Positions 538 to 62,191 are shown, counted from the first letter of the stretch. The stretch is 64,000 bases of DNA from Hyaloraphidium curvatum SAG 235-1 (GCA_025558095.1 JAIVFI010000030.1:1-64000); one strand, 5' to 3'. The notes: generated by a model not told the origin, from the sequence alone. Numbers and translations: made by a program.

Positions 538-1813
538 GTAAACGGCGGGCCCCGGGAACCGGTTTGGGCGGCAAACAAACAATCGCGGCGAGCGGGCGAC
601 GCCTCCCACGCGGCCGCACGCCGGCAAGGACGCCGCGCCGAGCAGAAGCGGGTTCCGAGCGGGCCGGGCCCGCACGAGCAGCCAGGGGAGCAGGGGGCGG
701 GAACCAGCCTCCGCTCCATGACGCATCGTCGGAGCCAAAATCCCCGTGCGACCGCCGGCAGTTGGATCCGGGATCGTGCAGTCCTATACGGCTGCCATCG
801 TACGAGAGCAGCGAAGCGGATCGGTTTCCGGTTCGCCCGCCCCCGCGCAAGTTCGAGCGTGGCCGAACGAAAAAAAGGAGCAGGGACCGCGGCCGCCTTT
901 CGGACGGCGGGCCAGAGGCACGCATCCGCCAGCTGCGTAAGCAGGGGCCACCCGGCAGACGCCGCACCGCTCGGCGCCTCGGCGTGCGCCGGGTGGCGAT
1001 GTGTGAAGGGTGCCCCGGTGCTAGACGGCCACGAAAACCCGCCCGAGCCCGTTGATGGCAACTTGAAACTGGGCGGTCGATTCCGCCGGAAAAGTCGTCG
1101 GTAACATACGCTCATGCTGTCGGAGATTTTCCAGTCGATGGCGTGGGCGGGGAACCCGAGGGAGGAAAGGCGACCGGTTCGTTCCGCGGTCTTGGGCCGA
1201 GAAGCACAGGTTCCCGGCAGCCTGGCAATGCTTCAGCGGCCCGCGGTTGAGAAGGTGCGGAGGCGTGTCTTTTTGATGACTTCCTGCCGTTTTTTCTGGG
1301 GGGCGTCCATGGCACGATATGGTCCTTTGCTCGTCAGAAGAGTCCGGGGTCCCTGCAGGCACGCTCACCTGTCCAGAGGCCGGTGCATCCCGTGGTCCGG
1401 AACACAGAAAGATGCTGTCCGAGCCGATTCCGCGGCGACACTTCCCGCGTGAGGCGATCGCGAAACCGGAACAGGAACGTCTACGAGACAATACGGGCGA
1501 GGCGATTGGCATTGCTGCAAACGAAAGTTCCAAGTCCCTGTATTTTTCTTTCATCTTCCCTCGTTTCGCTTCCCTGGGAGCGTGTTGCGGAGCAGATCCT
1601 GTGTTGGCACGGGCGGCCACCTCCGCTCGCCGCAGCGCCGCGCTGGTACGTACGGTCCCGTCGCCTTGCCACCCTCTCCCTGTGGGATTCACCCCACGGA
1701 GAGAGGACACACGGGACGAACGACCAGCGAGCTCTCTCCCGACGGGAACCCGTCGTAACCGTGGGCTCGACTTGTGAGCGGCACGGGGAAGCGCGACGCG
1801 TTCCCGGCGCGGC

Positions 1814-4135: not shown

Positions 4136-4272
4136 TTTGCGATCGTTTGTGGGGACGGGCGGTGATGTGAATGACAGCGGAGGTGGCTGATCGCCTGTTG
4201 GTGCGACCGTCGGGGTTCCGGGCCGCGACCCTCGTCACACGAAACTGACAGCGCGCGAACACCAAACAAACC

Positions 4273-7106: not shown

Positions 7107-7644
7107 GGGAGGATCGGAGCGGATGCAGGATCAGGCGGGAACGAGACGAGGGGCGGTCGGAACTGTTTTCCGCGCCGTGTCTACATTGCACTTCATCTAT
7201 CTCCTTTGCATCGATCAGAAACGGTGGTTTTGTGTGCATTGGTCGGTCCTCGGGGCGACGGTCGAGGCCGTTCGGGCCTGAACGGCGGCTGGTTAAGCTC
7301 CGACGGAGGACGCTGCCTTTTCCGTTCCCTTCGGACCCCGACGGAACGCTTCTGCAGAAGTTAAGGGCGGGATAGGCACGGCTGGACCATGGCAAGAGCG
7401 CGCTGGGGTTGCGGTTCCCCCCGGGTCCACTTTTCTGGCCGGTGAGTCGACGGCGTGGGGCCCCAGAGCCCTGGCCGATGACGTCGCGGGGCGGTGCCTG
7501 ATCCCCACAACAAAGGACCCCTCTCACACGGCCCCTCTCCGCTGCCCTGCAACGACCTAACCCGAACGTAGGCCCGCTCCCCGCGTGCTTTGCCCCTCGC
7601 CCGCGGCTGAGCTCAACCTCCGCCCAAGGCCCGCCGTCCGAGCC

Positions 7645-8252
7645 ATGGCGCGCATCTCCGCAACCATCCTGATCGCCCTCGCGGCCGTTGCCTGCCTCTT
7701 CGTCGGTGCGTCCGCCCTGTAAGTTGTCTTCGTGGGGCACCGCAACGCGGCAGGCCACTGAACGGAGCCCGCCCCCGCCCCAGGCCTGCCGACGAAGCCC
7801 GCGCCCTGAGCGTAAGGAGCTGCTCCGAGTGCCCCGAAGAGACACACTACTGGTGCGTTCCTCGTCCGCTTGCGGTCGCCATGGGCCCCTGCTGATCGAC
7901 CATCGCCCCGCCCCCGGCCAGCGAATACTCCGAAGCCGGCACAATTTGCCTCGCCTACGCCAACGCCCGCTCGCTCTACCGCCGCTACGCCCCGCAGTGC
8001 GGCGCCGTCGGCCAGGACTGCTGCCCCGGCTACTCGTGCACCGCCCCCGCCGTCTGCAAGTTCGGCCCGCCCACGGCCTGCGTCACCTGCGGGCTGCTGT
8101 ACAACCCGTGCTGCGGCGGGATGGGCGGCACCTGCACTGCCGGGGCGTGCGACAGCTTCGGGACCTGCGTGCCGTGCGGCGGGTCGGGGCAGCCGTGCTG
8201 CGCCGGGAACCAGTGCAACAGCGGGCCCTGCTTCACCAGCACCTGCTTGTGA
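7645..8252 (+). CDS. Small secreted cysteine-rich precursor (3 exons)
   Basis: Exons 7645-7718, 7784-7852, 7922-8252 give MARISATILIALAAVACLFVGASALPADEARALSVR-SCSECPEETHYCEYSEAGTICLAYANARSLYRR-YAPQCGAVGQDCC...CGLLYNPCC...CGGSGQPCC...STCL*. Canonical splice sites; not in ORF track. Confidence 0.85.
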
Positions 8253-8416
8253 GGAGGGCAGAAGGAAGGTTTCCAGGCAGCCAAGCATCGCTTCTATCAG
8301 TCTCGCCAAGTAGCCGCCGCAGTGTGGATCGTCGGAAGTATCGGATATCAAACAGGCGTCACGTTGCTTCGCACCCGCTGGCGGCCACCGTCCCGGCGAT
8401 CCAGCCGAGCCCACCA

Positions 8417-8660
8417 GTCCGTGGCGCGATGACGAGTTCGATCCCGCCGATGCCGGGTGCGACGTCCTGCGGCACAAGTCCCCGGGGCTTTCTACGCCGC
8501 ACCGCTTGACGACCCCGACTCCGGCCCGCTGGTCCGCAGGGAGGGGCCGCTGTTCCACGATGTCGTCCTCCGGCACGCTGTGCAGGAGCTGCGGTGTTAC
8601 CACATCAGCTCCTCGGACTTTGTCTATCGAGGAGGAGGTCGGGGGGTGGTTTTTTGAGGT
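8417..8660 (+). pseudogene. Degenerate copy of the last exon of the 4273-7106 gene
   Basis: Aligns by eye with about 6847-7088 (gacgagttcgat...tgcgacgtcct...ttctacgccgc...gaccccgact...gaggaggtcgggg) with indels that break the frame. Confidence 0.85.
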
Positions 8661-9001
8661 ACATCACGGCCCTGGGACCGCTGCAGCCGGAGCGCTGGGG
8701 CGCCCGCGAAGACGTTGTCGAGCGATTTCCGTGCCATTCCGGGGTGGACCATGCTTCTGATTCCGCGCGCCCATGTGACCATCCGTACGTGAGCGACGGA
8801 ACTACATTCGATACAAAACCCAACTCCCGCACCTCGGATGTCGCCTCGCGCCTCCGATCCCGCGTCCCGTCGCCGGTCGCCCCACGTGCGTGCGGCGCAC
8901 CCGCCCGAAGACCCTTGGGCCGCCCAAACGCGCCGCCAATCTCCGTTCAGCACCGCCCCAACCCGGCAACAGGGCCGCCCCGTGCGGTGCCGCGAGACAG
9001 A

Positions 9002-9256
9002 ATGGGCGCGGGAAAAGCGCTCGAAGACGGGTTCCCGCCGCCCCGCCCGCCGGACGAGCCGCACGCGGGGGAAGGGGAGGGCGGGGAGCGCGGGCGCCGC
9101 GCGGCCGACCGCGCTGTCTGGGCGTCGCTGCTGGGCGCCGGCGCCGCGCTGCTTATTTTCGCCGTCGTGCTGGCGGCGTTCGAGGCCGCGTTCCCGGATT
9201 CCGCGTCGGGCGCGGCGTGGGAGGACTGGGGAGGGCCGGCGGACGGGGCGGCATGA
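9002..9256 (+). CDS. Small single-TM protein (84 aa), hypothetical
   Basis: ATG 9002; hydrophobic VWASLLGAGAALLIFAVVLAAF; GC3-rich codons. Confidence 0.45.
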   Translation: MGAGKALEDGFPPPRPPDEPHAGEGEGGERGRRAADRAVWASLLGAGAALLIFAVVLAAFEAAFPDSASGAAWEDWGGPADGAA

Positions 9257-9972
9257 GGGCTCGGCGCCGCGCGGACGGGAACACCGGGACGGCCCGCCGG
9301 GCACGTGGGACCGATCGTGGGGATCGAATGCGCCGACTCGCGGCGGGATTGGGCACGAATGGGGGTTCGGCCGGAGGGGGGGCTTCCTTGCCGCAGCGGA
9401 TCGGCGACGGCGGTGGCCGGTGGTGGCGACACCCCTCGCTCCCTCTCCAGGGCACGCGAACTCGATCGGCGGATCGGAAACTTCCGTGCCGCACTGGAAT
9501 GCATGTTCCGCCGGCTGCGGGCCGGGATGCTCGGGATGCCGCTGGCGGCGCCGTGTTTGGCGCGGCGAGCCGGCCCGCAAGGACAGTGGCCCGCCCGCGG
9601 GATCGACCGGCGCCACTGCAGGGACTCACGGACGGCACGTATTCTTCAGATGGACCGGGAGAGAACGGTTGGCTCGGATTGGCGGTCGCGCTACCCTCGA
9701 TGTCCGCATCGCGAGCGAAGGAGCGAGGCGGAGCGGATTCGCCCCGGCAGACACAGACGTAGAGACATGTAGACCAGCTTAGAACGGACATCAATTCTGC
9801 ATCCGCCGGACGGCACCGTGCTTCTTCCACCTTCATCGCGGCGACCGATCAGCCGCTCCGGGGCACGTGCCCGACCGCTTCCCGCGTCCCGCATCCCGCA
9901 TCGTCACTCCCCTCCATCCCCCCCCTCTCCCCTCCCTCCCTGCCCCCATCTACCGTCCCCCCGCCGCCCCCG

Positions 9973-10161
9973 ATGCAGCGCTTCCGCCCCCTCCTCGACG
10001 GCAGCCCGCCGCCCTCCTTCGGCGGCGCCCTCCGCCTCCGCATCACGCTGCTGCTCTCCGCCGCCGCCCTCCTGGGCGTGGGCGTATGGCACGCCGTCGT
10101 GGGGCTGCTGGCGTCGCGGGAACAAGGGGGCTGGGCGGTGCGGGGCAACGCGAGCGGGTGA
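9973..10161 (+). CDS. Small single-TM protein (62 aa), hypothetical
   Basis: Follows a C-rich 5'UTR-like tract typical of genes here; TM segment ITLLLSAAALLGVGVWHAVVGLL. Confidence 0.4.
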   Translation: MQRFRPLLDGSPPPSFGGALRLRITLLLSAAALLGVGVWHAVVGLLASREQGGWAVRGNASG

Positions 10162-46592: not shown

Positions 46593-48118
46593 TCAAGCCG
46601 TTGCAGGACAGAAGCTCTCCAGGGTCGCCGTCACCCCGAAAGCCCGCAGCACGCTCCCAAGTGCCACGGTGACCGTCAGGCCCGTCACCAGCATCGTCCT
46701 CACCGTCCCGAACGACACCACGAACCCGAACAGCCTCGCCCTGTACCTGGCGACGTCCTGGAACGACGCTATGGCCCGATCGTGCAGCGCGATCTCGTCC
46801 GCCAGGGGTCCCGGCCCGGTGCGGAGGGCGAGCGCGCGGAGCTCCCGCTGCGCGTCGCGGTAGACGGCCGCGACGGCGTCGATGAGCGAGTGGCGCGCGG
46901 CGAGGTTGACGGCGTTGACGGTAAAGTACACTGCGGCGTGAGCGAAGAAGGCGAGCTGCCATGCGGAGATGCAGCGGCCGACCGCCTGCGGAAGGTGCCC
47001 GGGGAGCCGTCAGGGTGCGCGTCCGGCTGTACCGGGACGGCGCAATGCTCACCGCATAGAGCGCGGTAAGCAGGGCTAAGCCTGGAATCAGAGCGAGCCC
47101 GAACAGCCGCGATAACACGAGCGAGTCCTGGTGCCGCCGGAACCGGCACAGGGCCGCAAAGTGGTAGTGCAACCTGACATAGAGCCACGAACGTGAGCGG
47201 GGAGGGACGTCGCCGGCCGCAGCTGCGCGGCGGAACCGTCCTAGGAGGTCTCCCATGGCGTTGTCGACGGCGCGGCAGTGCAGCCGCCGCTCCAGGGCCA
47301 GGTGAGCCATGTTGTCCACCGCAAGGAGCCGGGAAATAGACAACAAGAGTTGCGCCGGGAAAAAGAAGGTCCATATTGCGCCGAGGAGGATGCCGTACCA
47401 AGTCGACCAAATACCTGCGCCGAAGGTTACCACCGGAGTATACGCGAGAAGGAAGAAGGTTGCCCAGGGAATGGAAACGTTGCCGAGAATATCAAGGAAG
47501 TCAAGCATACCAGAAGCGCTCTCGACCCAACTGCAGCACGAGACACACGGGCATGAAAGGTCACCGGGCACATGGCGTACGAGGGACGAGGCGGCAATGC
47601 CGGCCTCTGGCGACTTGACCCGGCCAACGAGGCGTAGCCATCTGCAGAGCGCTCCCACGTGCGAATACTCCGCCCCACCGTTGAGGAGGAAGTTCTTGCC
47701 CAGGCCCTTGGTAGCCAACCCGTTCATGACCGCGTTCCCGGCGAGGAACAAGGCCACGCCGGCGATTCCGAACGCAGCATCCTTGGCGGCGAACGTGTCT
47801 CCCGAAAACAGCAGGGTAACCCCGAGCAGAGCCACGGTAGCTGCGCTCGAAGGAGTGAGAAGAACCAGCCCGGCACCGCCCCGGGACACGCAGCCCGAGC
47901 CACGCCGCAGCCTTGGCCACCCCGCCGAGGTCGCGCAGCATTCCGTCTGCGGTCAGCGGGTCGGCCGCACGCGCCGCGTCGTTGGGGTTCGCGCCCTGCT
48001 CCTCGTCGCAGAACGTCGGCACCGGGGGAGACGGGGCGGGGAACAGGGCCAGCCACTCCTCGGGGAGGAAGTCCGCGTCCTTCTGAGGGAGAACGTCGTC
48101 GGTGTCCGAGGCGGCCAT
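46593..48118 (-). pseudogene. Frameshifted 7TM-family copy B (inverted paralogue of 60655-62191)
   Basis: Same N-terminus, intron position and C-terminus as copy C. Small deletions near 47890-47850 split the N-terminus across three frames. Confidence 0.75.
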
Positions 48119-48945
48119 CGTTAGCGGCGTTGCGGGGGGAATGTGTCTGGGGTGCTTCTGTGGAAGGGCTGGGACCAGTACGTTGTCTCCCGCGGCCGAC
48201 GAGTAACTACCTGCATCGCCGGCGTCCGAAGCTATTTCGCATGGTCGCGAGCATTGGAGCGATTGCGTCCTTCAATGATCCGGGCGCCGTTTCCCGTAGA
48301 CTCCTCGCACCGGCCCTAACGGCCTCGAAACGGCATGGCCTGCGCAGGCTTTCTCTCTACTCGTGACCGCCGGTGCTCTTCGTCATCGCCCAAGCGGCCG
48401 ATCCGAAGCCTACAGCTGTGACGTGCTTCTTCTCTGCGGTCGCCGCTGCAAGCCTTCGGCAATGCAGTTTTCGCGACGCGGCGGAGCCGCTATTGTTGCG
48501 GGTCCCCGATCTGCGGAGCTGTCTACTGCGGCACTAGAGGTCACTTGCCCGAGATGCTTTTGCACCGTCTGCCAACGTGCAACCTTTAATGTGAGGTAGG
48601 GTTGGCGCTTGAGTGGTGAGGACTCACAGGATCAATGGCCGGACCCGCAGGGTCCGAGGCGGCGGCACGGCTTCTGGAACCAACAAGGTCCGCCGGCCCG
48701 GGCGCGAACGGTGATGCATTGGATTGTTTCGGACCACGGAATCCGTGAGTGTGCTTACTTGGTTCAATGTCCGATGTGTCACGTCTCTCGGCCTGACGAT
48801 GGAATCGGCGCGGCGAATGCGAACGGACGGACACCCCAGCCACGCCAGAGCGGCGGCAGGGGAGGTCTTTGCGGCAAAATCAACCGCAGCAACGGCTCGC
48901 AACTCCGCCGCGTGAGCTTCTTCGAGTCGCTTCGCGCTTGCCGTT

Positions 48946-49161
48946 ATGAGGCCGCCGGCCTTCGCGCTCCTTGCCGCGCTGCTCTTCCTAGCGTTCCTCT
49001 GGGCGCCGCGCGCGTCCGGCCTCGCCGTTCCCTCCCAAGCCGGCGAAAATGAGGAGCATGCGTTGGCTGCGCGAGTGGCCTCCCCCGGGGGCCAGGCTTC
49101 CGGTCCGTTGCGGTCAGGCGAGATCTGGTCGGTCCTACGCGAATCCGCTAGGGCGCGCTAG
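48946..49161 (+). CDS. Small secreted peptide precursor candidate (71 aa)
   Basis: Signal-like MRPPAFALLAALLFLAFLWAPRASG, acidic pro-like segment ending ALAAR. Its stop overlaps the opposite gene's stop in CTAG at 49158-49161. Confidence 0.35.
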   Translation: MRPPAFALLAALLFLAFLWAPRASGLAVPSQAGENEEHALAARVASPGGQASGPLRSGEIWSVLRESARAR

Positions 49162-50498
49162 CACATGGCAGCCAACGCAGCCGCGGCGGCAAGTGCGGGC
49201 ACCAACCCGGCCATCGCCCTGTTCCCGCCGGCGATCCGGCTGCTCGTGACGGTGCTGGTTGCGCCGGTGGTGGATGCGATGCTGCTGGACGCGATGGTGC
49301 TGGAAACCACAGTGCTGGACGCGAGGGTGCTGGTCGCGGTGGAGCTGGCGTCGGTGCTCGGGGCTATCGTGCTCGGGGCCGCAGTTTCCGTGGTGCTCGG
49401 AGCGGCGGTGCTGGGAGCGGCGCTGCTGGTCGCAAGAGTGCTGGGGACCGCGGTGCTGGAGACAACGGTGCTGGATTCCACCGCGCTGGATTCGACCGTG
49501 CTGCTGGCCACCGTGCCTGTGGAGGCCACGGTTGAAACCGGGGTGCCGGTCCCCGCGGCACTGGATGCGATCGTGCCCGTCGCGACGGTGCTGACGGTGG
49601 CGGTGGTCGAGCCGGAGATGGCGGCAAAGGGGATGGCAGGGGAGCCGTCGACGACGGAGGCGCACCTGGCCGTCATGGCGACTGCGGCGGGGAAGTTATC
49701 GGCGTGCAGTAAGGGGGGAGAGAGAGGGGGCCATACAGGTGATGGGGCCGAGCGAGACGGTGCCGCAGTTGCCGGCGGTGACGTCGAAGGTGCCGACGCC
49801 GGTGAAGGGGATCTGGGGTGGCAGGAAAACGCGTCATGGGAGGCGGCCAGCAGGCGACGGGGAGAAACCCACGGTGCAGGCGTCGTTACCGAAGAAGGCC
49901 ATGGTGCCCGAAGCGGCGCCAGGGGCGCAGGCAGGGCGGCCGAAGGCGGGGATGCCGATGAAGCCGAGGGGCACGCACTGGTTGGCGATCACGGCGGCGG
50001 CGGTGAGGTAGGTGCCGGAGCAGGTGGCGCCGGACCACTGGGTGACGACGAAGTAGTCGCCCTGCGGATCGGAGCGGAGCGTCAGTGCTGGGCCGCGCGC
50101 GGAAATGGCGCGCGGCAACCCACCGAGCCCTGGAGGGTGAAGGACTGGGGTGCATTGGCGTTGCAGGTCTGGGTCACGTCGTAGGGCACGTTGGCGCTGC
50201 TGGACATGCATGCGACGCTCCCCTGGCAGGTGGTCGGCAAGTTTGCCTGGACTGCTTGGGGGGGAAGGGGGTGAACGGGGGACACTGATCAGTGAGGGGG
50301 GAAGGCGCCGCGGCAGCACGCACAGAGCTGCGGCGCCGTGGCGTTGGCCGTGCAGCCGCTGTCGGGCAGGAAGCCGTCGATGATGGTGGCGCCCCGGGCG
50401 GGAACGGCGGCCGCGGCGAGCAGGGCGGCGATGATCCCGAGCGCTCTGACGCGCAGCGGGAGTCCTGACTGCGAGCAGCTATTCTGCCGCCGAGTCAT
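49158..50498 (-). CDS. GPI-anchor-type cell-surface protein: receptor-kinase ectodomain plus Ser/Thr stalk, no kinase
   Basis: Signal peptide; four introns at the same positions as in the receptor kinases; Cys-rich ectodomain; 5-residue S/T repeats; C-terminal AGGNRAMAGLVPALAAAAALAAMC*. Confidence 0.85.
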
Positions 50499-50986
50499 GT
50501 CGGGATGGGCATCGGAGACGTGAACCGAGAAGTTCCCGAGCGGTCCGAGGACGCGTCGCCGGTCCATCGGCCGTGCTCGGTCGCAATGCAGTACTGACAC
50601 TCAGACGACCCGACGGCGTCGTCGCGGCCGCGAGATCCCCTCTCCACCGGAATTCCGCTCTCCGCCCACGCGCCGCACAGTGCCGGCTCCTGCGGGTTCG
50701 GTCGAGGCAGCGACGGAACTTGGCCGCTGGCTCCCTGGACGGGGCGAATTGCGACGCGGCGGGCGCCCGTCCCCGCGCCTTCGGCGGAAGAAACACTGAT
50801 GATGCGTTGCCGCAGGAGGCCCGCTGCGCAGGTCTTGAGGACTCGGCGTCGGGAAGGAGGGTGGGGACGCGCGGGCTGGTGATCTGACTCGACAGGATCC
50901 CCGCTCCCCGCTCCTCGAATCACAGCGCAGACAGACTTGTAAACACGATTGCTTAACAAAAATCGGGCGAGCTTCTACCGTCGTCC

Positions 50987-53384
50987 CTATCCGACGATCT
51001 CGTCCAGCTCCTTGGCCACCTGCACGAACGTCGGCCTCTTCTTCGGGTCCTGGTCCCAGCACCGCTCCATAAGGCTCCACACTGCGTCCGGAACCCCCTC
51101 GGGCCGCTCCGGGCGGACGCCCTTGACGGCAACGTTGTACAGGACCTGGATGGGAGGTGGTTGTCAGCGTTTGTCGCGATGGCGGCGCTCGCACCCACCA
51201 ATGCCGGGTTCAGCAGCTCCTCGAGCGGGTACTTGCCCTTGCTCACGACCTCGTAGCACAACATCGAGAACGCGTACACGTCCGCCGGCTTCTGCAGCGC
51301 CGCGCCGTCCACCAGCTCCGGCGCCAGGAACCCCGGCGTGCCCGAGAGCCCGCCGCCGACGGTGCCCGCGGCGGTCGACTTGCCGACCTCCTGGCGCACC
51401 CGCGAGAGGCCAAAGTCGGTGATCATGGCTTTGCTGCCGTCAATGAGCACGTTGAGGGACTTGATGTCGCCGTGCAGGATGCCGAGGCCGTGCAGGTAGA
51501 CCATGCCGTTGGCGACGTCTTCGAGGAAGCGCAGGCCGAGGTCTAGGGGCCAGCCGCGGGCCGACAGGTACTTGCGGAGGTTGCCGTCGCGGACGAGGTC
51601 GGTGACCATCATCGGGGGAGAAGGGCAGTAGGCCATCAGCGGGAGGACTGCGTAAAAGCGTGGAGATCAGCACCTCCACAGACTCCGAGCCGTTGGCGAG
51701 CCGCTCACCGTTACGCTGGACGAGGCCCTCCCAGTTGGTCACCTCCTTCGCAAAAGCCTTCAGGGTGTGCTCGTCGAGGTCTCCTTTCAGAGTCTTGACT
51801 GCGACTCTAGTCCCGCGCAGAGTGCCGACATAGACAACCCCAAAGCTGCCTTCTCCCAGCTTTTGCGAGCTGTCGATGACGATGTCCGTAGCCGAAACAA
51901 GGAGCTTGGAGCTCGGCTGCGGGACAGGGGGGGGGGCGATCGGGCTTCCGCCCGGAAAAAGGGGAGTGCCGGAGGCGACCGACCCAGCGGCGAGCGTGGA
52001 TCCTGCTGTGTCCGCAGAAGCTCCGTCCCCAGAGGCTGCCAGAGGAAACGCAAGAGCAACGGCGGCAGCGGGTGTCACGGGTAAAGCTTGCTCCTGGTGT
52101 GGGTCGTTGCTCGGCACTGAGGCGACGTCCTCCGCGAGCGCAGGGTTGCTGGCTTCGGAAGGTGAAGCCGCCACTCGCGGCACGCTGTCAGCGTTGCCCC
52201 TGGCGGTGGATGAAAACCCGCGAACTGTCCCAGGTTCCATATGCGGCGAGCCTGCAGGCATCTGCTTCTCTGCTTTCTCCGCAGGAATGCTCTCCGCAGG
52301 CCTCCTCCTCCGCCTCATCCAGAACAGCAGCACTACAAGCAGAGCAAGCGCCGCGAGTCCCCCAAGTACACCGCCTACGATTGCTCCGACGGGCGGCGAT
52401 GAGGAGGTCGGCGGAGAAGGGAGAGGCGTTGATTGCGTTGGCGTCGTGGTGGTGACGGATTGGGTACTTGTCGTGGCAACCGATCCCCCTGTAGCCTCTG
52501 CAAATGGAATCGGGAAACCCTGAAGCGGGTAATCGCACTTGGCCGTTAGAGCGACTGTGGCGAAACTGGTCACCAGAACTTCACGAAGAACGGAGCCGGA
52601 GGGCATACACGTAGCAGAACCGAGATTCAGAATGTCGCAGTGGCCGCGAATGGCTTTGAACGTGCCAAAGCTGGGGAAGGGCCTCTGCATGGATGCCGTG
52701 CGCATGAATAGGGTAACGCAGAGCGCGCATGAGCGGTAGGGGAAAACGTACCGAACAGGCCCCGTCAACAAAGAAGGACAAGCTCCCTTCCGCGTCGGTG
52801 ACGCCGGAGCATGTGGAGAGGCCATAGGCCGGGATGCCGAGGAAACCAAGCGGGACGCACTCATTGGTGAGCACCGCGGCGGCGGTAGAATATGTGCCGG
52901 AGCAGGAAGTGCCGGACCATTGGGTGAGGACGAAGTAATTGCCCTGCGCGGAAAATGCAAGAATCAATGGAGAGAGTGGGCGCGGCAGAAGGCGAGTGAA
53001 GAACCACCGTGCCCGAGAGCGTGAATGACTGAGGGGCGCTTGCGTCGCAAATCTGCCGAGCGTCGTAGCCAACGCTGGAAGTAGATTCACAGGCTAAATT
53101 TGCCTGACATGTCCCGGGTAGCTGGGCTTGGATTGATGGCGGTTTCGATGCCGGCCGAGTAGTGGCCGGTGTGAGCACGCACGAAAGAAATCAATGCTGC
53201 GCGGCAGCTCACAGAGCTGCTTGAAAGTGCCTGCAACAACGCATCGGCTCCCAAGAGTGAAGCCGTCGATGATTGTCGCGCCCCGTGCAGGAACCGCCCT
53301 CGTGATGATGGCGGCGATGATCGCGACCACGATGACGCGAGGCGCCGCTAGCGGCCCTGAATTATTGCTCCGATGCGCAGTCAT
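50987..53384 (-). CDS. Single-pass receptor-like TKL kinase, copy L (7 exons)
   Basis: Signal, Cys ectodomain, Thr stalk, TM VGAIVGGVLGGLAALALLVVLLFWMRRRRR, GEGSFG, VAVK, HGDIKSLN, DFG, GTPGFLAPE, CWDQDPKKRP. Confidence 0.88.
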
Positions 53385-54086
53385 GCTCGAGATCAACGTC
53401 GTAGCCACGCGTGTGCGGTGGCGGCACTTCGTCCCCCCGCGTCGGACTGCGCCCCGGCACAGCCGATCCGATGGCAAAGTCCGCGGGCGCGAACTCCGCT
53501 TGCGGCAAAGTGGTGGCCGGAACCCGCTCGGTGGCGCCGTGCGCTTGAAGCTCGGGGCGAGGGAGCAACGGAACGTTGCCACGGGTTTGGGGTCGCGTGC
53601 GACGCCGCGGCAGGCCGCTTGAGGACCGCGTCCCGAACTCCGACGAGGTAAACCCAACTGCAGCGCCAGCCCAGGCAACGGGCCTAACGTCCGGGAACTG
53701 AAGGCCTGTTTGAAGGCCCACGGCAGCGACTATGACCGCACGCGAAGCGGTGGTGTTCCTTGGAGCGGAGCGAGGGACCTCAACGAAGTCGAGCGCACGT
53801 CCTCGGGGCACGTGGGCGGCGCGGGGAGGGTTTCCGCGTCGGCACTCGTCCCGTCCAGGTCGAAAACCCAGCGTAGTTTTCGAGCAGGGGAGAGAGCGGC
53901 TGGTGGCGGCTGGAGGTCCGACGGTTCCAAGGACGCACTCGTCCGAGAGAGCCTGTACGTCTACATCCCTCACGCCCGCTTGGAGGCAGCTCGAATGGAG
54001 CAGCAAAGGAATCAAGAGCCGCCTTTTCGCGATTGTACAGGCCTGCAATTAGCATCTCGGCGTCAAACAGCTTCATGCTCCTGTGG

Positions 54087-55406
54087 TCATCTTCGATCAA
54101 CGGCCTCTGCCCGCCCGCCAATCATCTCCACTTCCGCCTCCCCATCCAAGTCCCCCAGCGGCTCGTCCAAAACCCCCTCCTGCACCCCTTCCCCGCCCCC
54201 GTCCTCCTTGGGCGCCTCCCCGCACCCCTCCCAATCCACCGTCCACCTCGCCGCGATCCCCATCTCGGCCTTCCACCCCTCCCCCGTCCTCAGGCAGTCG
54301 TTGAGCCCCGCGTGCTCGCACCCCTTCGATCCCGAATAGACGCAGTCCGAGCGCGCGCGGAGCAAGGGGGCCGAGTACAGCGCGGCCCCGCCGAACGCGC
54401 CCCGCACGGGTACGAACGGTTCCTTCCCCTCGCCGTCCCCCTGCTCCTTCACATTCTTCATCCCCTCGGGCCCGACATACTCGCAATACCACCCCCCTTT
54501 CTTCGCCCCCGCGCAGCTGCGGTGGTCCAGCGCTCCCCCGGGAAACGCGCCCCCGCCGTCGAGCGCGAACCGGTCGCAGTAGTATCCTTGCGCCCCCTCC
54601 GCGTGCGGCGCGGCGGGGACGGATGCGACGGTGCCGTTGGGGAGAGAACGGGGGAGGTACCACCCACAGATGCCGTTGGGGAAGAGGGCGGACCAGCCCT
54701 TGCCCCCGAAGGGCGGCCGGAGGTGCGAGGTGGAGGGGTCGAGGCGGTCGTACCGCCGCTCCGCGGCCAGGAGGTTGGTCCACACACCCTCCCATCCCTC
54801 CACGCCCCGCTGCCGCTCCACGCGCCACGGCACGCACATGTCCGTGTCCACCGGGAACAGGTAGTCGACGTTCGAGTACCAGGAGTGGGTCCGCAGCGCG
54901 TGGAGGTACCCGTCCCGCGCGCGGGCGAGCGTGCGGAGGTCCTTCTTCCCGCCCGGGTGGCGGAACGCGACGGCGCGGGCAGAGAGGATCTTCGGGTGTC
55001 GCGAGGGGCGGAGCGGCGGGGCCGGCGGGGCCGGCGGGTACGGAGGCGTCCAGTCTTTATGGTCGTCCTCGGATTCCAGGAACGGCACGCCGCGTTCGTC
55101 CGCCCAGGCGCGCAGCGCGCGGCCGCCGTCCCGCGAGCCGTTCTCGACGAGGAGGACGTGCAGCGCGCCAACCATCGACGCGAGGCGCTCCAAATTTGCG
55201 AGGAGGAAGGGGAGCTCGTGCGCCGCGGAGCGGGCGATGGTGGCGGCGAGGAGGACGAGGTCCGACGGGCAGCGCGCGCGGGACGCGTTGGAGGCTGTCC
55301 GTGGCGCGGGCTCCGGCTCGTCATCGAGGGCGGCCGGCGGCGACCGGAGCAGGAAAAACGACGAAATGAGCAGGACGAGCAGAACGAGTAGGTTCGGATG
55401 GGGCAT
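54087..55406 (-). CDS. CAP59/CMT1-like (GT69) mannosyltransferase-family glycosyltransferase
   Basis: N-terminal TM; VENGSRD, LARARDGYL, VDTD (DxD), DRFAL, VRGAFGGAALY, CEH; intronless. Confidence 0.8.
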   Translation of the reverse strand: MPHPNLLVLLVLLISSFFLLRSPPAALDDEPEPAPRTASNASRARCPSDLVLLAATIARSAAHELPFLLANLERLASMVGALHVLLVENGSRDGGRALRAWADERGVPFLESEDDHKDWTPPYPPAPPAPPLRPSRHPKILSARAVAFRHPGGKKDLRTLARARDGYLHALRTHSWYSNVDYLFPVDTDMCVPWRVERQRGVEGWEGVWTNLLAAERRYDRLDPSTSHLRPPFGGKGWSALFPNGICGWYLPRSLPNGTVASVPAAPHAEGAQGYYCDRFALDGGGAFPGGALDHRSCAGAKKGGWYCEYVGPEGMKNVKEQGDGEGKEPFVPVRGAFGGAALYSAPLLRARSDCVYSGSKGCEHAGLNDCLRTGEGWKAEMGIAARWTVDWEGCGEAPKEDGGGEGVQEGVLDEPLGDLDGEAEVEMIGGRAEAVDRR

Positions 55407-55824
55407 TCGAGGCCATGGGCGACACCGTTGACGGCTCTGACGGATCCGTCGATCCCCCTCCCTCGATCTCCGAGCAATTCAAGAAACCAACGACGTGAGC
55501 CACGAAATGCACAGATATACATGTGATCTATCGAGTTCGGCCTACTGGAAGTGTGGATGCTCGCGATTCGGACAGGAATCGTCCCGACCGTCCGCCGCGC
55601 CCATTCGCCGCCTGGAAGCCAACTGAGCCTGATCCGCCAATGCATGACACCGCGGAGGACACGGAAGAGCCTCTCACCAGTAAATTGCGCCCGTCTTTGC
55701 CAGTTTCGGTCGCTTGCCTCCGTTTGGGGGCCTACCAACGGTCACATGACGTGGCCCATGCAGGGCATCTGGTTCCGCACGGCCGGCGGTCCCTTATCTG
55801 ACGGCGTCATCCCGGCCCACCGGA

Positions 55825-57366
55825 ATGGCGCTCGTGTGCAGCTGCGCGACGACGCAGCTCGTGCTCCGCGGCACGGGCTCGCTGTCGCTGGTCGGCGGGG
55901 CCGGGCGGCCGCCTGGGGAGCGCGCCGCGGAGATGCCGGTGGCGACAACCGCGCCCGCGGGAGTCCAGGGTCCCGGACGCCCCGGGTTGCCCGGAGAACT
56001 CGTATCGCGCATTTTGAGCAAAGTGGACCCGCTGGACTCGGCGACGCTGGCGGCCGCCGCGGCGGTGTGCCGCGCGTGGCGGCCGTGGGCGACCGAGCGG
56101 CTGTACGCGTACTGCCGGCCGCCGCTCTCAAAGCTCGACTCGCTGGCCGCATTCTGGGAATCTCAGTACCCTTCGGGCGACGACGCGCCCTCGGCCAGCC
56201 TGCTGCTCGACGCCCCGCGGCTGCAGCACGCCGTGCGACTGGACGGGCTGTTCCCGCTGCCCCCCGCGCCCTCGTCGCTTCCCGACCACCCGCTGAAAAC
56301 CCTCGACCTCTCGCTGCTCTCGCACGCTTCGGCAGCCGCCTTGCACCGCTTGGCCCTGCACTCCCCGCCGGCCTCGGCCCTGGTCACCGCGAAAGACTAC
56401 CGCCACATGGCCGGCGGCTCCCTGGCCGCCCTGCTCACCCGCTCGCCGCGTCTGCTCCGCCTCGTCCTACCGGAAAGCTACGGCGAGGACCGCCTCTCCA
56501 TCGACGACTTTTTCCTCTCCCTGCTCCCCACCACCGTCCCCCTCCTCGCCCATCTGGCCGTGTACGACAACGGCCACGTGACGGACCGCGGCCTCCCGCC
56601 CTTCTCGCAGCTCCCCCTGCGCTCGCTCCACCTCGCAGTCGTGCCGTGGCGCGTGATTCTCGCAAAATTGCTGTCGCACCTGCCGCCCACCCTGGAATCG
56701 CTGGGCATGGGCAAGCTCAAGGCGCGCGACGCGGACCAGCTCGTCTGGTTCCTCCGCGACCACCCTTCCATGAACGAACTGGACCTCCCCCACGCCGAGC
56801 CCGGGTTCTTCGCGGGCGGCACCGTCGCCCGCCTCCTCGACGCCGCCCCGGCGCTGGAGAGGCTGGGGATCGAGGTCGAGCCCGGGCAGACCATCCCGCC
56901 CCCGCCGCCTGCGGAACCGGAACCACAACCTGCGGAAGGCGAGCAGCCCGATGCCGATCCCGGCGGCGCCGAACAGCTGCAGCCGCCCCCCGTCGCCGCA
57001 CCGGCGCCGCAGGAGCCGGAACCGCACTACCTCTCGGGCCTGCTGTCCCCTCCCCCGTCCTTGACCCACCTCCGCGTGGCGGGGCACGCGCTGCCTCCCG
57101 ATCTGCTCCCCCGCGTGCTGCCGCAGCTCGTCGCGCTGGACGCCAGGGGGTGCGGGGCGGAGGTGGCCGCGGCGTTCGCGGCGGGGGCAAGGTACCCGAA
57201 GCTGAGGATGGTGGACGTGCGAGGATGCGAGGGCGTGGAGAGGGAGGTGGTGGTGGCCGCGTGCCCGGCGCTGGAGAGGGTGTTCGTTGGGGAGATCAGG
57301 CAGGGGGACGGGCTGCGGGAGTGGGGCGCTTTCGGGAGCGAGGGGGGGAGGTGGAACCTCTCTTGA
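55825..57366 (+). CDS. F-box / RNI-like leucine-rich-repeat protein
   Basis: LPGELVSRIL...AVCRAW F-box followed by LxxLxL repeats. Start may be the ATG at 55932. Confidence 0.8.
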   Translation: MALVCSCATTQLVLRGTGSLSLVGGAGRPPGERAAEMPVATTAPAGVQGPGRPGLPGELVSRILSKVDPLDSATLAAAAAVCRAWRPWATERLYAYCRPPLSKLDSLAAFWESQYPSGDDAPSASLLLDAPRLQHAVRLDGLFPLPPAPSSLPDHPLKTLDLSLLSHASAAALHRLALHSPPASALVTAKDYRHMAGGSLAALLTRSPRLLRLVLPESYGEDRLSIDDFFLSLLPTTVPLLAHLAVYDNGHVTDRGLPPFSQLPLRSLHLAVVPWRVILAKLLSHLPPTLESLGMGKLKARDADQLVWFLRDHPSMNELDLPHAEPGFFAGGTVARLLDAAPALERLGIEVEPGQTIPPPPPAEPEPQPAEGEQPDADPGGAEQLQPPPVAAPAPQEPEPHYLSGLLSPPPSLTHLRVAGHALPPDLLPRVLPQLVALDARGCGAEVAAAFAAGARYPKLRMVDVRGCEGVEREVVVAACPALERVFVGEIRQGDGLREWGAFGSEGGRWNLS

Positions 57367-58060
57367 TCGGATCCTCGGGGAGGCGGATGGGGACGGTGCC
57401 GATGGGAACGGGAAGGAAGGGAACAGTGTCTTGCCGGATGGGAAGGGCGCTTGCTAGATGTACAGGTAGACGGCGGCGAAGAAAGGCCGATAGACAGATG
57501 CAGTAGTGGAACCTATGGGTTGGGAACGACCCGCTCTCCATCTTCTTCCTAACTGGAGCAAGAGCAGCCGTGCCCCGTTGTCCTTGCGACTCGTGGCGCG
57601 TGCTCTCCAGTTTTCTTCGCGTGCGGACGTCGGCAGTCGGCATGCACCTGCTTCGATTGCTTCGAGTATCGAGTATCAGCCTCACCAGCCCACCTCTACT
57701 TCGACCCACGTCTCCACGTCTCGCTACCGGATACCTGTTCACCGACCGGGCCGCCCGCTTTCGTCGACCAATCTTCTGCTTACGGGGCAGGCAGTGTTGG
57801 CTGCCACCGCAACGCACGGCGCACCCGCAGCGAGGAAACCGGCACTGCGCGCGGGTTCTTTCATTGCCTCGCTCCGCGCTCGAAGGAGCAGCACCCGCGG
57901 TGCCGTCCGCACCGTGCGGCGCTTAGACGGAGAGTGAAGCCCTCGGGCGCTCCCACATCGGGCCGGGTGGTGCCGCATCCCGGCGGGCGCGAGGTCCACC
58001 GCGCCCTCGCTTCGTTGTCGGTCTTTTCGCGGCCCCCCTCGACTGCGCCGCACAGCCAGG

Positions 58061-60498
58061 ATGCCTCCGCGACGACTTCGCTTACAGCCGCGACGAATGA
58101 CGCGCGTCTGCGCTGTCGGGATCGTCGCCGCGTTGATCGCCACGCGCGCGGTTCCGATCTGGGGCGCGACCATCGTCGACGGCTTCATCCCCGGCTCGGG
58201 CTGCAGGGTCAACGCCACCGCGCCGCAGCTCTGTGCGTCGACGCCCGGCCCCCACCCGCTCCTCACTGATCATGTCCCCCCTTTCCCTCTCCTGCCGAGC
58301 AGTCCAGGCGAACCTGCCGACCACCTGCCAGGGCAACGTCGCCTGCATTCCCAGTAACGCCACAGTCAACTACGACGTGACCCAGACCTGCAACGCCAAC
58401 GCCCCCCCGTCCTTCACCCTCCAGGGCTCGGTCGGTTTCCGCGCCCCATTTCCGCGCCCGGCACACTCTGACGCCCCCCTCCCCCTCCCATCCGCAGGGA
58501 GACTACTTTGTCGTCACCCAGTGGTCCGGCGCCACCTGCACCGGCACCTACCTCACCGCCGCCGCCGTGATCGCCAACCAGTGCGTGCCCCTCGGCTTCA
58601 TCGGGATCCCCGCCTTCGGCCGCCCTGCCTGCGCCCCTGGCGCCGCTTCGGGCACCATGGCCTTCTTCGGTAACGACGCCTGCACCGTGGGTTTGGCCTC
58701 GTGGCCCAGCGCCCGCCCTCCCATGACGCGTTTGTCCTGCCGCCCCAGATCCCCTTCACTGGCCTCGGCACCTTCAGCGTCACCGCCGGCAACTGCGGCA
58801 CCCTCTCGCTCGGCCCCTCCACCTGTAAGTCCCCCACTTCCCCGCCCTTTACCCCGCGCTGACAACTTCCCACCCACAGTCGCCCTGACCGCCAAGTGCG
58901 CCTCGATCGTCAATGGCTCCCCGGTCATTCCTTTTGCTGCTATTGCGGCGGTTACAACTACGACAACAACCACGACAACGCAAACGTTCACCACCGCGAC
59001 ACCAACAGAGGCGACACCGGTTCCTCCAACGCCAGCATCCTCATCTCCACCTGTTGGGGCGATCGTCGGTGGCGTGATCGGAGGAATCGCGGCGGTCGCG
59101 GCCATCGCCGGGCTGTTGTTCTGGCTGCGGCGAAGAGGTAGGCCTGCGGAAAGTGTTCCTGCGGATCCAGCAGAGAAGCAGCAGCCTAGAGGCTCGCCGA
59201 ACCTGGAAACCGCTGCGACAGCTCAGCACTACAAGGGAGCGGGCCCACCACCAGCGCCAAATGGCTTCGTTGCTTCTGCTCCAGTTCCCGCAACCATTGC
59301 CGTTGACAGTGTCCCGCGAGTGGTGGCTTCAGCTCCCGAACCTAGCAAAACCGCACTCCTCGTGGACCTCGCCTTGGTGCCAAACAATGACGCGGAACAA
59401 GCTTTGCCCGTGCAGCACGCTGCGGCCGTTGCTCTTGCTTCTCCTCCGTTGGGTATAGGGGGTGGAGCTGAGGACACGGGATCGACCTTCGCCGCGGCCT
59501 CACTTGCCTCCGGTGCTCCCCTTCCCCCCGGCGGCGGAACCCCGATCGCCCCCCTCCCTGTCCCGCAGCCGAGCTCCAAGCTCCTTGTTTCGGCTACGGA
59601 CATCGTCATCGACAGCTCGCAAAAGCTGGGAGAGGGCAGCTTTGGGGTTGTCTATGTCGGCACTCTGCGCGGGACTAGAGTCGCAGTCAAGACTCTGAAA
59701 GGAGACCTCGACGAGCACACTCTGAAGGCTTTTGCGAAGGAGGTGACCAACTGGGAGGGCCTCGTCCAGCGTAACGGTGAGCGGCTCGCCAACGGCTCGG
59801 AGTCTGTGGAGGTGCTGATCTCCACGCTTTTACGCAGTCCTCCCGCTGATGGCCTACTGCCCTTCTCCCCCGATGATGGTCACCGACCTCGTCCGCGACG
59901 GCAACCTCCGCAAGTACCTGTCGGCCCGCGGCTGGCCCCTAGACCTCGGCCTGCGCTTCCTCGAAGACGTCGCCAACGGCATGGTCTACCTGCACGGCCT
60001 CGGCATCCTGCACGGCGACATCAAGTCCCTCAACGTGCTCATTGACGGCAGCAAAGCCATGATCACCGACTTTGGCCTCTCGCGGGTGCGCCAGGAGGTC
60101 GGCAAGTCGACCGCCGCGGGTACCGTCGGCGGCGGGCTCTCTGGCACGCCGGGGTTCCTGGCGCCGGAGCTGGTGGACGGCGCGGCGCTGCAGAAGCCGG
60201 CGGACGTGTACGCGTTCGCGATGCTGTGCTACGAGGTCGTGAGCAAGGGCAAGTACCCGCTCGAGGAGCTGCTGAACCCGGCATTGGTGGGTGCGAGCGC
60301 CGCCATCGCGAGCTTCGCTGACAATCACCTCCCACCCAGGTCCTGTACAACGTCGCCGTCAAGGGCGTCCGCCCGGAGCGGCCCGAGGGGGTCCCGGACG
60401 CGGTGTGGAGCCTGATGGAGCGGTGCTGGGACCAGGACCCGAAGAAGAGGCCGACGTTCGTGCAGGTGGCCAAGGAGCTGGACGAAATCGTCAGATAG
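58061..60498 (+). CDS. Single-pass receptor-like TKL kinase, copy R (7 exons)
   Basis: Introns 58233-58302, 58431-58497, 58687-58748, 58825-58879, 59777-59837 and 60287-60339 give an open signal-ectodomain-stalk-TM-kinase frame ending LDEIVR*. Confidence 0.92.
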
Positions 60499-60654
60499 GC
60501 CCTACGGTAGATGTCCCCACTACTTTTGCAATTCAATCGTGTTTGCAGATCTGGCGGCGCTGTGATTCGAGGAGCGGGCTGGCCACGGCGCGACTTCCTC
60601 TCCCCCGCGAATCTCCCGCAGATTGTCTCCCGAGCAGACAGCCTCCCAACGACG

Positions 60655-62191
60655 ATGGCCGCCTCGGGCGCCGACGACGTTATCCTTCAGAAGGACGCGG
60701 ACTTCCTGCCCGAAGAGTGGCTGGCCCTATTCCCCGCCCCGTCTCCCCCGGTCCCGACGTTCGGCGACGAGGAGCAGGGCGCGAACCCCGAGGACGCCGC
60801 CCGCGCAGCTGACCCTCTGACGGCGGACGGAATATTGCGCGACCTGGGCGGCGCGGCAAAGGTGGCGGCGTGGCCCGTCCTGCGCGTCCACGCGGCGCTG
60901 CCGGGCTGGTTCACGGCACTCGCGATTTCCCCTTCCAGTGCCGCCACCATCGCCCTCCTCGGGCTCACCGTGCCCTTGGCAGGGGACATGTTTACCGCCA
61001 AGGACGTGGCGCTCGGAATTGCGGGGACGACGCTGTTTCTCACAGGGCTCTCTGTCAGTTACGGCCTCGTCAGCCCGTTCCTCGGCGCCAACATTTTTCG
61101 GAACGGCTTGGTGGAGTTCTCGCACGTGGCAGCTCTTTGCCGATGGCTGCGGCTCGTTGGCCGAGGGAAAACGCCTCAGGGCGTCGAGGCCGCCTCCTCG
61201 CCCCTCGTGCGCCACGTCCCCGGCGACCTCTCTTGCCCGTGTACGTCGTGCTGCAGTTGGGTCGAAAGCACATCTGGAATCCTCGACTTCCTCGATCTTT
61301 TCGGCAACGTTTCCCTTGGTTGGATGGTCTTGTTCTTTTTCGCCTACACACCGGTTGTAACCTTCGGTGCGGCCCTGTGGTCGACTTGGTACGGCGCTCT
61401 CCTTGGGGCCATATGGGCATCCATGTTTCCGGCTTACATCTTCACTGCGTTGTCACGCCTCCTGGGGAACGACAATATGGCTCACACGGCCCTCCAACGG
61501 CGGCTGCACTGCCGAGCTGTCGATATGGCCATGGCTGACCTCCTGAGCCGGTTTCGCAGCGCCGCTGCTGCCGGCGATGCGCCTCCCCGCGCGGATTCGT
61601 GGCTCTACGTCAGGCTGCACTATCGCTTCGCGGCGCTCTGCCGGTTCAGACGCCAGCAGGACGGGATCGTGATCTCGCGGCTGTACGGGCTCGCTCTCGT
61701 GCCGGGTGCGGTCCTGCTTACCGCGCTGTATGCGGTGAGTGTCGCAGCGTCACGGTGCCGCCGGACACGCAACCTGACGGCTCCCCGGGCACCTTCCGCA
61801 GGCCGTCGGCCGCTGTATCTCCGCCTGGCAGCTTGCCGTGTTCGCCCACGCCGCGGTGTACTTTACCGTCAACGCCGTCAACCTCGCCTCCCGCAACTCG
61901 CTCATCGACGCCGTCGCGGCCGTCTACCGCGACGCGCAGAGGGAGCTCCGTGCGCTCGCGCTCCGCACCGGGCCGGGACCCCTTGCGGACGAGATCGCGC
62001 TCCACGACCGCGCGATAGCGTCGTTTCAGGACGTCGCCAGGTACAGGGCGAAGCTGTTCGGGTTCGTGGTGTCGTTCGGGACGGTGAGGACGATGCTGGT
62101 GACGGGGCTGACGGTCGCCGTCGCGCTGTGGAGCGTGCTGCGGGCTTTCGGGGTGACGGCGACCCTTGAGAGCTTCTGTCCCGTATCATAG
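60655..62191 (+). CDS. Seven-TM membrane protein, gustatory-receptor-like (7TMIC-like), copy C
   Basis: Intron 61735-61801; HVPGDLSCPCTSCC loop; C-terminal RAKLFGFVVSFGTVRTMLVTGLTVAVALWSVL. Confidence 0.75.

Follow-up and report, generated by a model that had tools for sequence, protein, structure and literature searches.

Does an early-diverging fungus carry single-pass receptor kinases of its own? To our knowledge, receptor kinases are held to be a feature of plants, animals, amoebozoans, and oomycetes, and fungi are generally said to lack them; the textbook set of fungal signalling proteins comprises G-protein-coupled receptors, histidine kinases, and Wsc/Mid sensors. The question is raised by two genes in the first 64,000 nucleotides of a contig of Hyaloraphidium curvatum SAG 235-1 (GCA_025558095.1, JAIVFI010000030.1:1–64000; this whole stretch is hereafter the window), designated A (50987–53384, minus strand) and B (58061–60498, plus strand). 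A preliminary description, made from the sequence alone, had placed plant-style receptor kinases at 50987–60498, and this span does hold both genes, running from the stop codon of A (50987–50989) to that of B (60496–60498). The same description contrasted them with Dikarya; this framing was misplaced, as H. curvatum (Monoblepharidomycetes) is an early-diverging, non-flagellate freshwater fungus and not a Dikaryon. Our analysis indicates that A and B are probably intact paralogous type-I single-pass receptor-like kinases, part of a family comprising at least 18 genes, with a lineage-restricted 10-Cys ectodomain that also occurs on gene-converted twins of the glycosylphosphatidylinositol (GPI) type.

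The window is eukaryotic DNA of 63–73% G+C. Gene models were built from six-frame translation and splice-site inspection, and exons were joined locally for checking frames and motifs; similarity and fold searches used single exons or database proteins (P0006, P0007, P0003, and P0015). Both genes consist of seven exons, encoding 670 aa in A and 689 aa in B, and the joined frames are uninterrupted. Each gene has six introns of 53–86 nt with GT donors and CAG acceptors, except for intron 1 of A, the acceptor of which is AAG. Copies of the ectodomain module were found in the genome in A, B, C, and D (contig C30), E (contig C25), F and G (contig C40), and H (contig C24). The donor of B exon 1 is GTGCGT, and its join to exon 2 gives APQL-F-QANLP, in gapless collinearity with the intron-less ectodomain of paralog E and identical to the join in P0007, the NCBI model of gene D. 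Exon 4 is conserved in all paralogs, A, C, and D among them, as well as in a metagenome locus (L012), and is needed for an open frame.

The anatomy given in the preliminary description—an ectodomain of about 170 aa with about 10 Cys, a Thr stalk, a transmembrane (TM) helix, a basic stop-transfer, a long juxtamembrane region, and a kinase with the loop HGDIKSLN—proved accurate in the joined frames. The N-terminus is charged, with a hydrophobic leader (residues 16–34 in B). The mature ectodomain is ~175 aa long and contains 10 Cys (positions 48–195 in B), with three NxS/T sites in B; apparent Cys codons in QLC and STC straddle splice donors and are absent from the mature protein. A Thr/Ser/Pro-rich stalk of ~30–35 aa follows in both proteins. 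The TM helix of B occupies residues 250–268 (PPVGAIVGGVIGGIAAVAAIAGLLFW) and is followed by RRRGR, the corresponding residues in A being RRRRR. The spliced frames have no hydrophobic segments other than the leader and this helix (residues 250–268). A low-complexity juxtamembrane region of ~165 aa leads to the kinase. Leader, ectodomain, one TM helix, and cytoplasmic kinase are thus in one spliced frame, which is the layout of a type-I single-pass receptor kinase, as had been proposed. By this layout, the proteins would span the plasma membrane and expose the module to the exterior; the stalk is probably of the O-glycosylation type, and the juxtamembrane region is probably disordered.

The critical point is whether the ectodomain and the kinase belong to one gene. 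Exon 5 is open throughout and by itself encodes the end of the ectodomain with its last Cys, the stalk, the TM helix, the juxtamembrane sequence, and kinase subdomains I–IV; exon 4 ends in phase 1, which requires exon 5. The position and phase of the intron between exons 4 and 5 are common to A, B, C, and E, and the NCBI model of D has the same join; P0006 (the NCBI model of C) and P0007 both join NDACT-IPFTG and enter exon 5 in phase 1. The combination of 10-Cys ectodomain, TM helix, and kinase recurs in the diverged paralogs E, F, and H. In E, the whole ectodomain is encoded by one intron-free exon and shows 46% identity (kinase, 54%). In the NCBI model of H (P0015, KAI9015399.1), the ectodomain tail is joined to the TM helix and the kinase. 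A relative in another organism (57% G+C) has the ectodomain, the TM helix with the motif GAI[IV]GGV, an SH3 domain, and the kinase in a single open reading frame (ORF) of 826 codons. The continuity of exon 5, the phase of exon 4, the linkage in the paralogs, and the joins in NCBI models of sibling genes together make it very likely that the ectodomain and the kinase are parts of one gene.

The opposite arrangement, with ectodomain exons and kinase exons on separate transcripts, so that a gene for a cytosolic kinase would follow one for a small secreted or GPI-type protein, would fit the existence of ectodomain-only genes (C, D, and G) and the failure to recover an NCBI model of A or B in homologue searches. 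It is, however, very unlikely: exon 5 has no in-frame start or leader of its own and stays in one open frame between the last ectodomain Cys and the kinase N-lobe, the TM helix included, and exon 4 depends on it for phase. The linkage is kept in E, F, and H at 40–46% ectodomain identity, the model P0015 fuses the same parts, and the ectodomain-only genes end otherwise, with a stalk, a hydrophobic tail, and a stop codon.

Several points weigh against the single-gene receptor interpretation. The evidence for the exon joins consists of sequence logic, collinearity with paralogs, and the NCBI models of sibling genes, and the join at intron 1 of A, with its AAG acceptor, is the least certain one. 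No NCBI protein model of A or B was recovered with the B frame or with exon 3 as queries: the B open frame returned sibling kinases only, and exon 3 alone gave no match, probably due to the length window. Hydropathy was calculated with a simple Kyte–Doolittle window, and the signal-peptide, TM, and GPI calls rest on it and on inspection of the sequence. Paralog F is apparently frameshifted near its 5′ end as assembled, and the structural models of the ectodomain are poor (predicted local distance difference test, pLDDT, of 32 and 41), so no ligand is indicated by them.

The ectodomain had been called unrecognised, and this was borne out: no described family was matched in Pfam or among 1.84 billion representative proteins. 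The Pfam scans of exon pieces, P0007, and the ectodomains of E and G gave no match at E-values up to 1–10, the WSC domain (PF01822) included. An exhaustive phmmer search of the 1.84 billion representatives with the 174-aa ectodomain of E retrieved only the Hyaloraphidium proteins P0006 and P0007 (the models of genes C and D) and P0005, in which E is mis-spliced, together with one metagenome fragment of 80 aa (P0011); P0008–P0010, bacterial repeat proteins aligned in low-complexity stretches only, were set aside. The metagenome contig (Joint Genome Institute 3300043314, 58% G+C; L012:262–1405) encodes a GPI-type homolog from an environmental organism, in which the exon layout is the same and the motif IPFTGLGT is identical. 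It was the only relative of the module found outside Hyaloraphidium, and it follows that the module is present in at least one other organism.

In the members compared, all ten Cys are conserved; they probably form five disulfides. AlphaFold models of the E ectodomain were of low confidence, with a pLDDT of 32 without an alignment and, with a 10-row alignment, of 40.6 (predicted TM-score of 0.43, seven beta strands). Structure searches on such a low-confidence model were uninformative (Foldseek against the PDB, E ≥ 0.5; atlas TM-score ≤ 0.36), and the scores of the Atlas feature search did not exceed 0.77. A Dictyostelium cluster from that search (CfaA_B_C, PF11912, 0.76) and an oomycete cluster were rejected, as hmmscan at E-values up to 1 gave no support. 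The module is lineage-restricted and, judging from the low-confidence model, probably beta-rich over its ~175 aa; it is an orphan by sequence, and we do not claim its fold as new.

The same module is carried by ectodomain-only twins. Gene C (NCBI model P0006, KAI9010042.1) lies outside the span of the preliminary description, and D is located just past the end of the window; the NCBI proteins KAI9010042.1 and KAI9010051.1 both map to the contig of A and B. Gene G is the GPI-type twin of F. A Ser/Thr stalk is present in C and not in D, and both end in a short hydrophobic tail. The C-terminal tails are ...AGGNRAMAGLVPALAAAAALAAMC* in C, ...GAGSMVRATLMPVLGAAAAAAAAAMY* in D, and ...SAGRVSAGVIGAVAAVGAVFVAL* in G, by which the three proteins are predicted to be GPI-anchored at the surface. 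In F, the frame shifts relative to G between GQAQVITVVP and VPSCTDPIV (L013:8655–8800 on contig C40).

By sliding identity, B is 98–100% identical to D over 58189–58640 and 98–99% identical to C over exon 3. Exon 3 of B shows 98–100% identity to C and D, 59% to A, and 46% to E. A and B are 55–75% identical outside a near-identical tract in the kinase half, introns included (Table 1). Codon analysis of the A/B ectodomains, which share 44–59% of their amino acids, gave a nonsynonymous-to-synonymous ratio (dN/dS) of 0.32 at dS ~1.0 vs a dS of 0.03 in exon 6; A and B are thus old paralogs, the kinase halves of which were recently homogenised. Purifying selection has acted on the A and B ectodomains as they diverged, and gene conversion keeps the ectodomain exons of B near-identical to those of C and D and the kinase of A near-identical to that of B.

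These data also bear on whether one or both copies are decaying, non-functional duplicates left by an inverted segmental duplication. The genes do lie in a young inverted duplication (arms 83–87% complementary) with active gene conversion, paralog F seems frameshifted, and stops occur in a copy of A on a redundant contig, C48. Nevertheless, we give very little credence to decay, since both frames are intact over seven exons with all catalytic residues present and the ectodomains show a dN/dS of 0.32 at dS ~1. C48 itself is a fold-back contig with 99.6–99.7% identity and many small indels, most simply explained as an unpolished redundant assembly piece, and its stops were rejected as evidence of pseudogenes. 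Bases 1–6077 of this 30.6-kb contig correspond to 56635–50536 of the window, reversed (99.6%), and bases 6086–10000 correspond to 50530–54451, forward (99.7%); the pivot is between genes C and A, and small indels put stops into the copies of the A kinase. The contig probably represents a haplotig that was left unpolished, or else an artefact of assembly.

The kinase of A and B is complete. Exon 6 matched PK_Tyr_Ser-Thr (PF07714) with 85.6 bits in A and 86.2 bits in B (E-values of 3e-24 to 5e-24, far beyond chance; curated cut-off, 23.1 bits), and the same family was matched by the N-lobe in exon 5 (24–24.8 bits) and by exon 7 (36.1 bits). Both proteins have GEGSFGVV, VAVK, AFAKEV with the alpha-C Glu, HGDIKSLN, DFG, APE, DVYAF, and CWDQDPKKRP; in B, the glycine-rich loop (G-loop) GEGSFGVV is at position 439, VAVK at 456, HGDIKSLN at 546, and DFG at 565, and APE is within GTPGFLAPE. 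Catalytic activity is predicted from this complete set of motifs. The catalytic loop HGDIKSLN and the P+1 loop GTPGFLAPE are of the Ser/Thr type, and the receptor tyrosine kinase marks HRDLAARN and PxxWxAPE are absent from A and B.

The designation plant-style is justified only by the layout. Exon 6 matched, in the PDB, CERK1 best (60.9 bits), with Pto (56.5), LIMK1 (55.2), RIPK3 (55), and Eph within a few bits. The full sibling kinase P0003 scored higher with CTR1 (100.9 bits), EphA2 (99.6), Lyn (95), Mer (94.5), and RIPK4 (94) than with CERK1 (90), i.e., without preference for the plant receptor-like kinase (RLK)/Pelle group. By these scores, the kinase appears to sit at the border of tyrosine kinases and tyrosine-kinase-like kinases (TKL), with no specific tie to plant RLK/Pelle. 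The non-RD (non-Arg-Asp) catalytic loop is present as HGD. Its proposed value as a hallmark of immune receptors does not stand: almost all relatives carry HGD, those from Agaricomycetes included, and it also occurs in ankyrin-repeat and dual-kinase members for which no TM segment was detected, so it is an inherited feature of the whole kinase family rather than a receptor-specific mark. The caveat that HGD is also common in cytosolic fungal TKLs was right. The nearest named relatives outside Hyaloraphidium belong to the Agaricomycetes (Tulasnella, Thelephora, Mycena, Marasmius, and Pleurotus).

A and B had been treated as two isolated genes, which understates their context. About 160 kinase matches were found in the genome with exon 6; 40 further kinase loci were fetched, making 44 examined loci together with A, B, E, and F. 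A TM helix and basic residues upstream of the G-loop in the same open frame, with a shared GAIVGG motif, were present in 14 of the 40, so at least 18 of the 44 loci are receptor-type; this is a lower bound, as a TM helix on a separate exon would escape. The TM motif of the cassette is P-[IV]GAIVGGVxGG, followed by basic residues. The ectodomains ahead of it include the 10-Cys module, RCC1 propellers (P0016, RCC1_2 with 146.8 bits ahead of the TM helix), Stig1-like Cys-rich repeats (P0012, 108.7 bits), Cys-rich regions with a QxW-like motif, and others. In a quick tree of exon 6 sequences (145 columns, limited resolution), A, B, and H were in an eight-member clade of receptor-type genes only (Shimodaira–Hasegawa-like approximate likelihood ratio test, SH-aLRT, of 89), and E and F were placed elsewhere. 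The TM label was clustered on the tree, with 8 changes vs 14.1 in shuffles. This pattern fits one conserved TM–kinase cassette with ectodomain replacement, for which a single origin and module shuffling between sub-clades are both possible.

Some further loci and models deserve mention. At six kinase loci, RCC1 repeats are directly upstream of the GAIVGG TM helix and in frame with the G-loop (Table 1); going by their sequence, the encoded receptor kinases would expose an RCC1 propeller outside the cell. The 826-codon frame of the other organism is P0002 (L014:3001–5481, Logan SRR23967301), in which an ectodomain containing Cys is followed by a TM helix with GAIIGGV, an SH3 domain inside the juxtamembrane region, and an HGD kinase. 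Other Logan proteins (P0013, P0022, P0024, P0028, and P0029) have a TM segment ahead of the kinase. Public models of sibling genes are faulty: P0005 (E, KAI9014072.1) follows the gene for 95 residues, after which its frame is wrong, and P0015 starts inside the ectodomain of H. Annotation of the receptor family in the public proteome is likely incomplete. P0017, a protein of 682 aa from the same contig, was rejected as a model of B, being an unrelated dual-kinase protein in which no TM segment was found.

Regarding function, an extracellular or cell-wall ligand would bind the ectodomain, with the GPI-anchored twin possibly acting as a co-receptor or competitor. Ligand or wall-derived input would cluster the receptors, and trans-phosphorylation of the juxtamembrane and kinase regions would yield a cytoplasmic phospho-signal. 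A and B share with plant RLKs the order of their parts, from a signal peptide and ectodomain through one TM helix and a juxtamembrane region to a kinase of the Ser/Thr type, as well as the use of many ectodomains on one kinase cassette and the occurrence of the same ectodomain in kinase-less GPI-type proteins. In plants, CERK1 partners with GPI-anchored CEBiP or LYM proteins. Unlike in plant RLKs, the kinase shows no RLK/Pelle preference, the ectodomain is unrelated to LysM, LRR (leucine-rich repeat), lectin, or any Pfam family, and the host is a fungus. It may be, tentatively and with considerable doubt, that we are dealing with a surface recognition system convergent with the pairs of RLKs and receptor-like proteins (RLPs) of plants, in which receptors and the GPI-type twins encoded next to them are kept matched by conversion, the twin serving as co-receptor or decoy, and the cassette is reused for varied cues. 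Microbes, prey or host algae, mating partners, and wall fragments would be candidate cues.

The main functional rival of ligand recognition is mechanosensing of the Wsc1/Mid2 kind, in which the Cys-rich head would be anchored in the wall, strain instead of a soluble ligand would cluster the receptor and switch on the kinase, and the GPI-type twins would be wall-linked structural proteins with the same wall-binding head. The Cys-rich head, Thr/Ser stalk, and single TM helix resemble the layout of Wsc/Mid sensors, which share with A and B a signal peptide as well, and the long stalk and GPI-type tail of twin C are typical of fungal wall proteins. By analogy, a wall sensor is conceivable, but we hold it to be rather unlikely. 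Unlike Wsc1–3 and Mid2, A and B have neither a WSC domain (PF01822) nor another Pfam match in the ectodomain, their stalk is much shorter than Wsc-type rods, and a full kinase takes the place of the short Rom2-recruiting tail; the RCC1 or Stig1-like ectodomains of siblings fit varied ligand recognition better than one mechanical role.

A lumenal sensor of the endoplasmic reticulum, Golgi, or vacuole would be comparable to IRE1 or PERK, which are also type-I proteins with a cytosolic kinase. This explanation is highly improbable, given that KEN/RNase and eIF2-alpha-kinase signatures are absent, with Pfam giving PK_Tyr_Ser-Thr and Pkinase only. A location at the secretory surface is suggested by the Thr/Ser stalk, the sites for N-glycosylation, and the existence of GPI-type twins, and multi-copy diversification of ectodomains is atypical for organelle stress sensors. 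Animal receptor tyrosine kinases are similar to A and B in their type-I single pass, and Eph, EGFR, and Mer were among the best PDB matches of the sibling kinase; they differ in having HRDLAARN, in contrast to HGDIKSLN and the Ser/Thr-type GTPGFLAPE.

The notion that early fungi possess receptor-like kinases has precedents. Zhao et al. (2014, PMC3937382) reported FslK, a fungi-specific kinase lineage near tyrosine kinases, from no groups other than Chytridiomycota (6 members) and Agaricomycetes; the word “transmembrane” does not occur in that paper, and thus no such architecture was described. Judged from distribution and motif, FslK may be the lineage of the A/B kinase: the nearest relatives fit the Chytridiomycota-plus-Agaricomycetes range, and the catalytic loop lacks the tyrosine-kinase AAR motif. 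Proteins with LRRs and a kinase, none with a TM segment, were reported from a chytrid (Soanes and Talbot 2010, PMC2939053), and a genome paper on Lobulomycetales (2026, PMC13618815) mentioned in passing expanded LRR-RLK orthogroups common to chytrids and speculated on sensing. A and B are similar to these chytrid proteins as kinases of early-diverging fungi discussed as possible surface receptors; they differ in that their ectodomain is not LRR and in that the TM helix and kinase are in one exon. The terms “receptor kinase”, “receptor-like kinase”, and “RLK” are absent from a 2023 review of fungal immunity (PMC10197012). Our literature search found no description of these genes and no link of Hyaloraphidium or monoblepharids to receptor kinases; as far as was searched, neither the A/B family nor its orphan module, TM cassette, or GPI-type twins have been described before.

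The family, if confirmed, would bear on how surface signalling of opisthokonts was lost or replaced toward Dikarya and on whether fungi possess surface pattern recognition; the RLK/RLP-like interpretation, if true, would provide a fungal counterpart of pattern recognition by receptor kinases. It would also bear on how receptor repertoires diversify, with swappable ectodomains, an orphan module, and converted GPI-type twins. These claims are based on sequence, and their value lies in a concrete, testable set of genes. The coordinates of the features are listed in Table 1.

Table 1. Exons of genes A and B, ectodomain-only twins, the conversion tract, and related loci (window coordinates unless a contig is given).
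Feature	Location	Strand	Content
B exon 1	58061..58232	+	Signal peptide with start codon; mature residues 1–22 (ATIVDGF...APQL); ends in phase 1
B exon 2	58303..58430	+	Ectodomain, 3 Cys; 100% identical to GPI-type twin D
B exon 3	58498..58686	+	Ectodomain core (GDYFVVTQWSG...NDACT), 4 Cys
B exon 4	58749..58824	+	Ectodomain (IPFTGLGTF...), 1 Cys, phase-1 end
B exon 5	58880..59776	+	Last ectodomain Cys, Thr stalk, TM helix, RRRGR, ~165-aa juxtamembrane region, G-loop, VAVK, alpha-C Glu
B exon 6	59838..60286	+	Kinase C-lobe core (HGDIKSLN, DFG, APE)
B exon 7	60340..60498	+	Kinase subdomains X–XI (CWDQDPKKRP), stop codon
A exon 1	53213..53384	-	Start codon, signal peptide, first mature residues
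A exon 2	53008..53126	-	Ectodomain; AAG acceptor
A exon 3	52752..52943	-	Ectodomain core
A exon 4	52609..52684	-	Ectodomain
A exon 5	51709..52554	-	Ectodomain tail, stalk, TM helix, RRRRR, juxtamembrane region, kinase N-lobe
A exon 6	51199..51647	-	Kinase C-lobe core
A exon 7	50987..51145	-	Kinase end and stop codon
Gene C	49158..50498	-	Ectodomain-only twin, 363 aa; signal peptide, 10-Cys module, ~140-aa Ser/Thr stalk, hydrophobic C-terminal tail
Gene D	Contig C30, ~67.6–68.4 kb, just past window end		GPI-type twin; NCBI model P0007
Conversion tract, B side	59520..60470		97–100% identical to A about 51015–51965, both introns included
RCC1–TM–kinase loci	L019, L021, L022, L028, L034, L047 (contigs C7, C21, C37, C40, C2, C36)		RCC1 repeats ahead of TM helix and kinase

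The span of the preliminary description also takes in the 4.7-kb spacer between A and B, which contains two unrelated genes. The ORF at 54087–55406 (minus strand) encodes 439 aa with an N-terminal hydrophobic anchor (MPHPNLLVLLVLLISSFFLL...) and without a Pfam match, and the ORF at 55825–57366 (plus strand) encodes 513 aa with an F-box (PF12937, 24.3 bits, right at the cut-off). Multi-TM genes at 46606–48121 and 60511–62181 flank the receptor genes and belong to the same inverted duplication.

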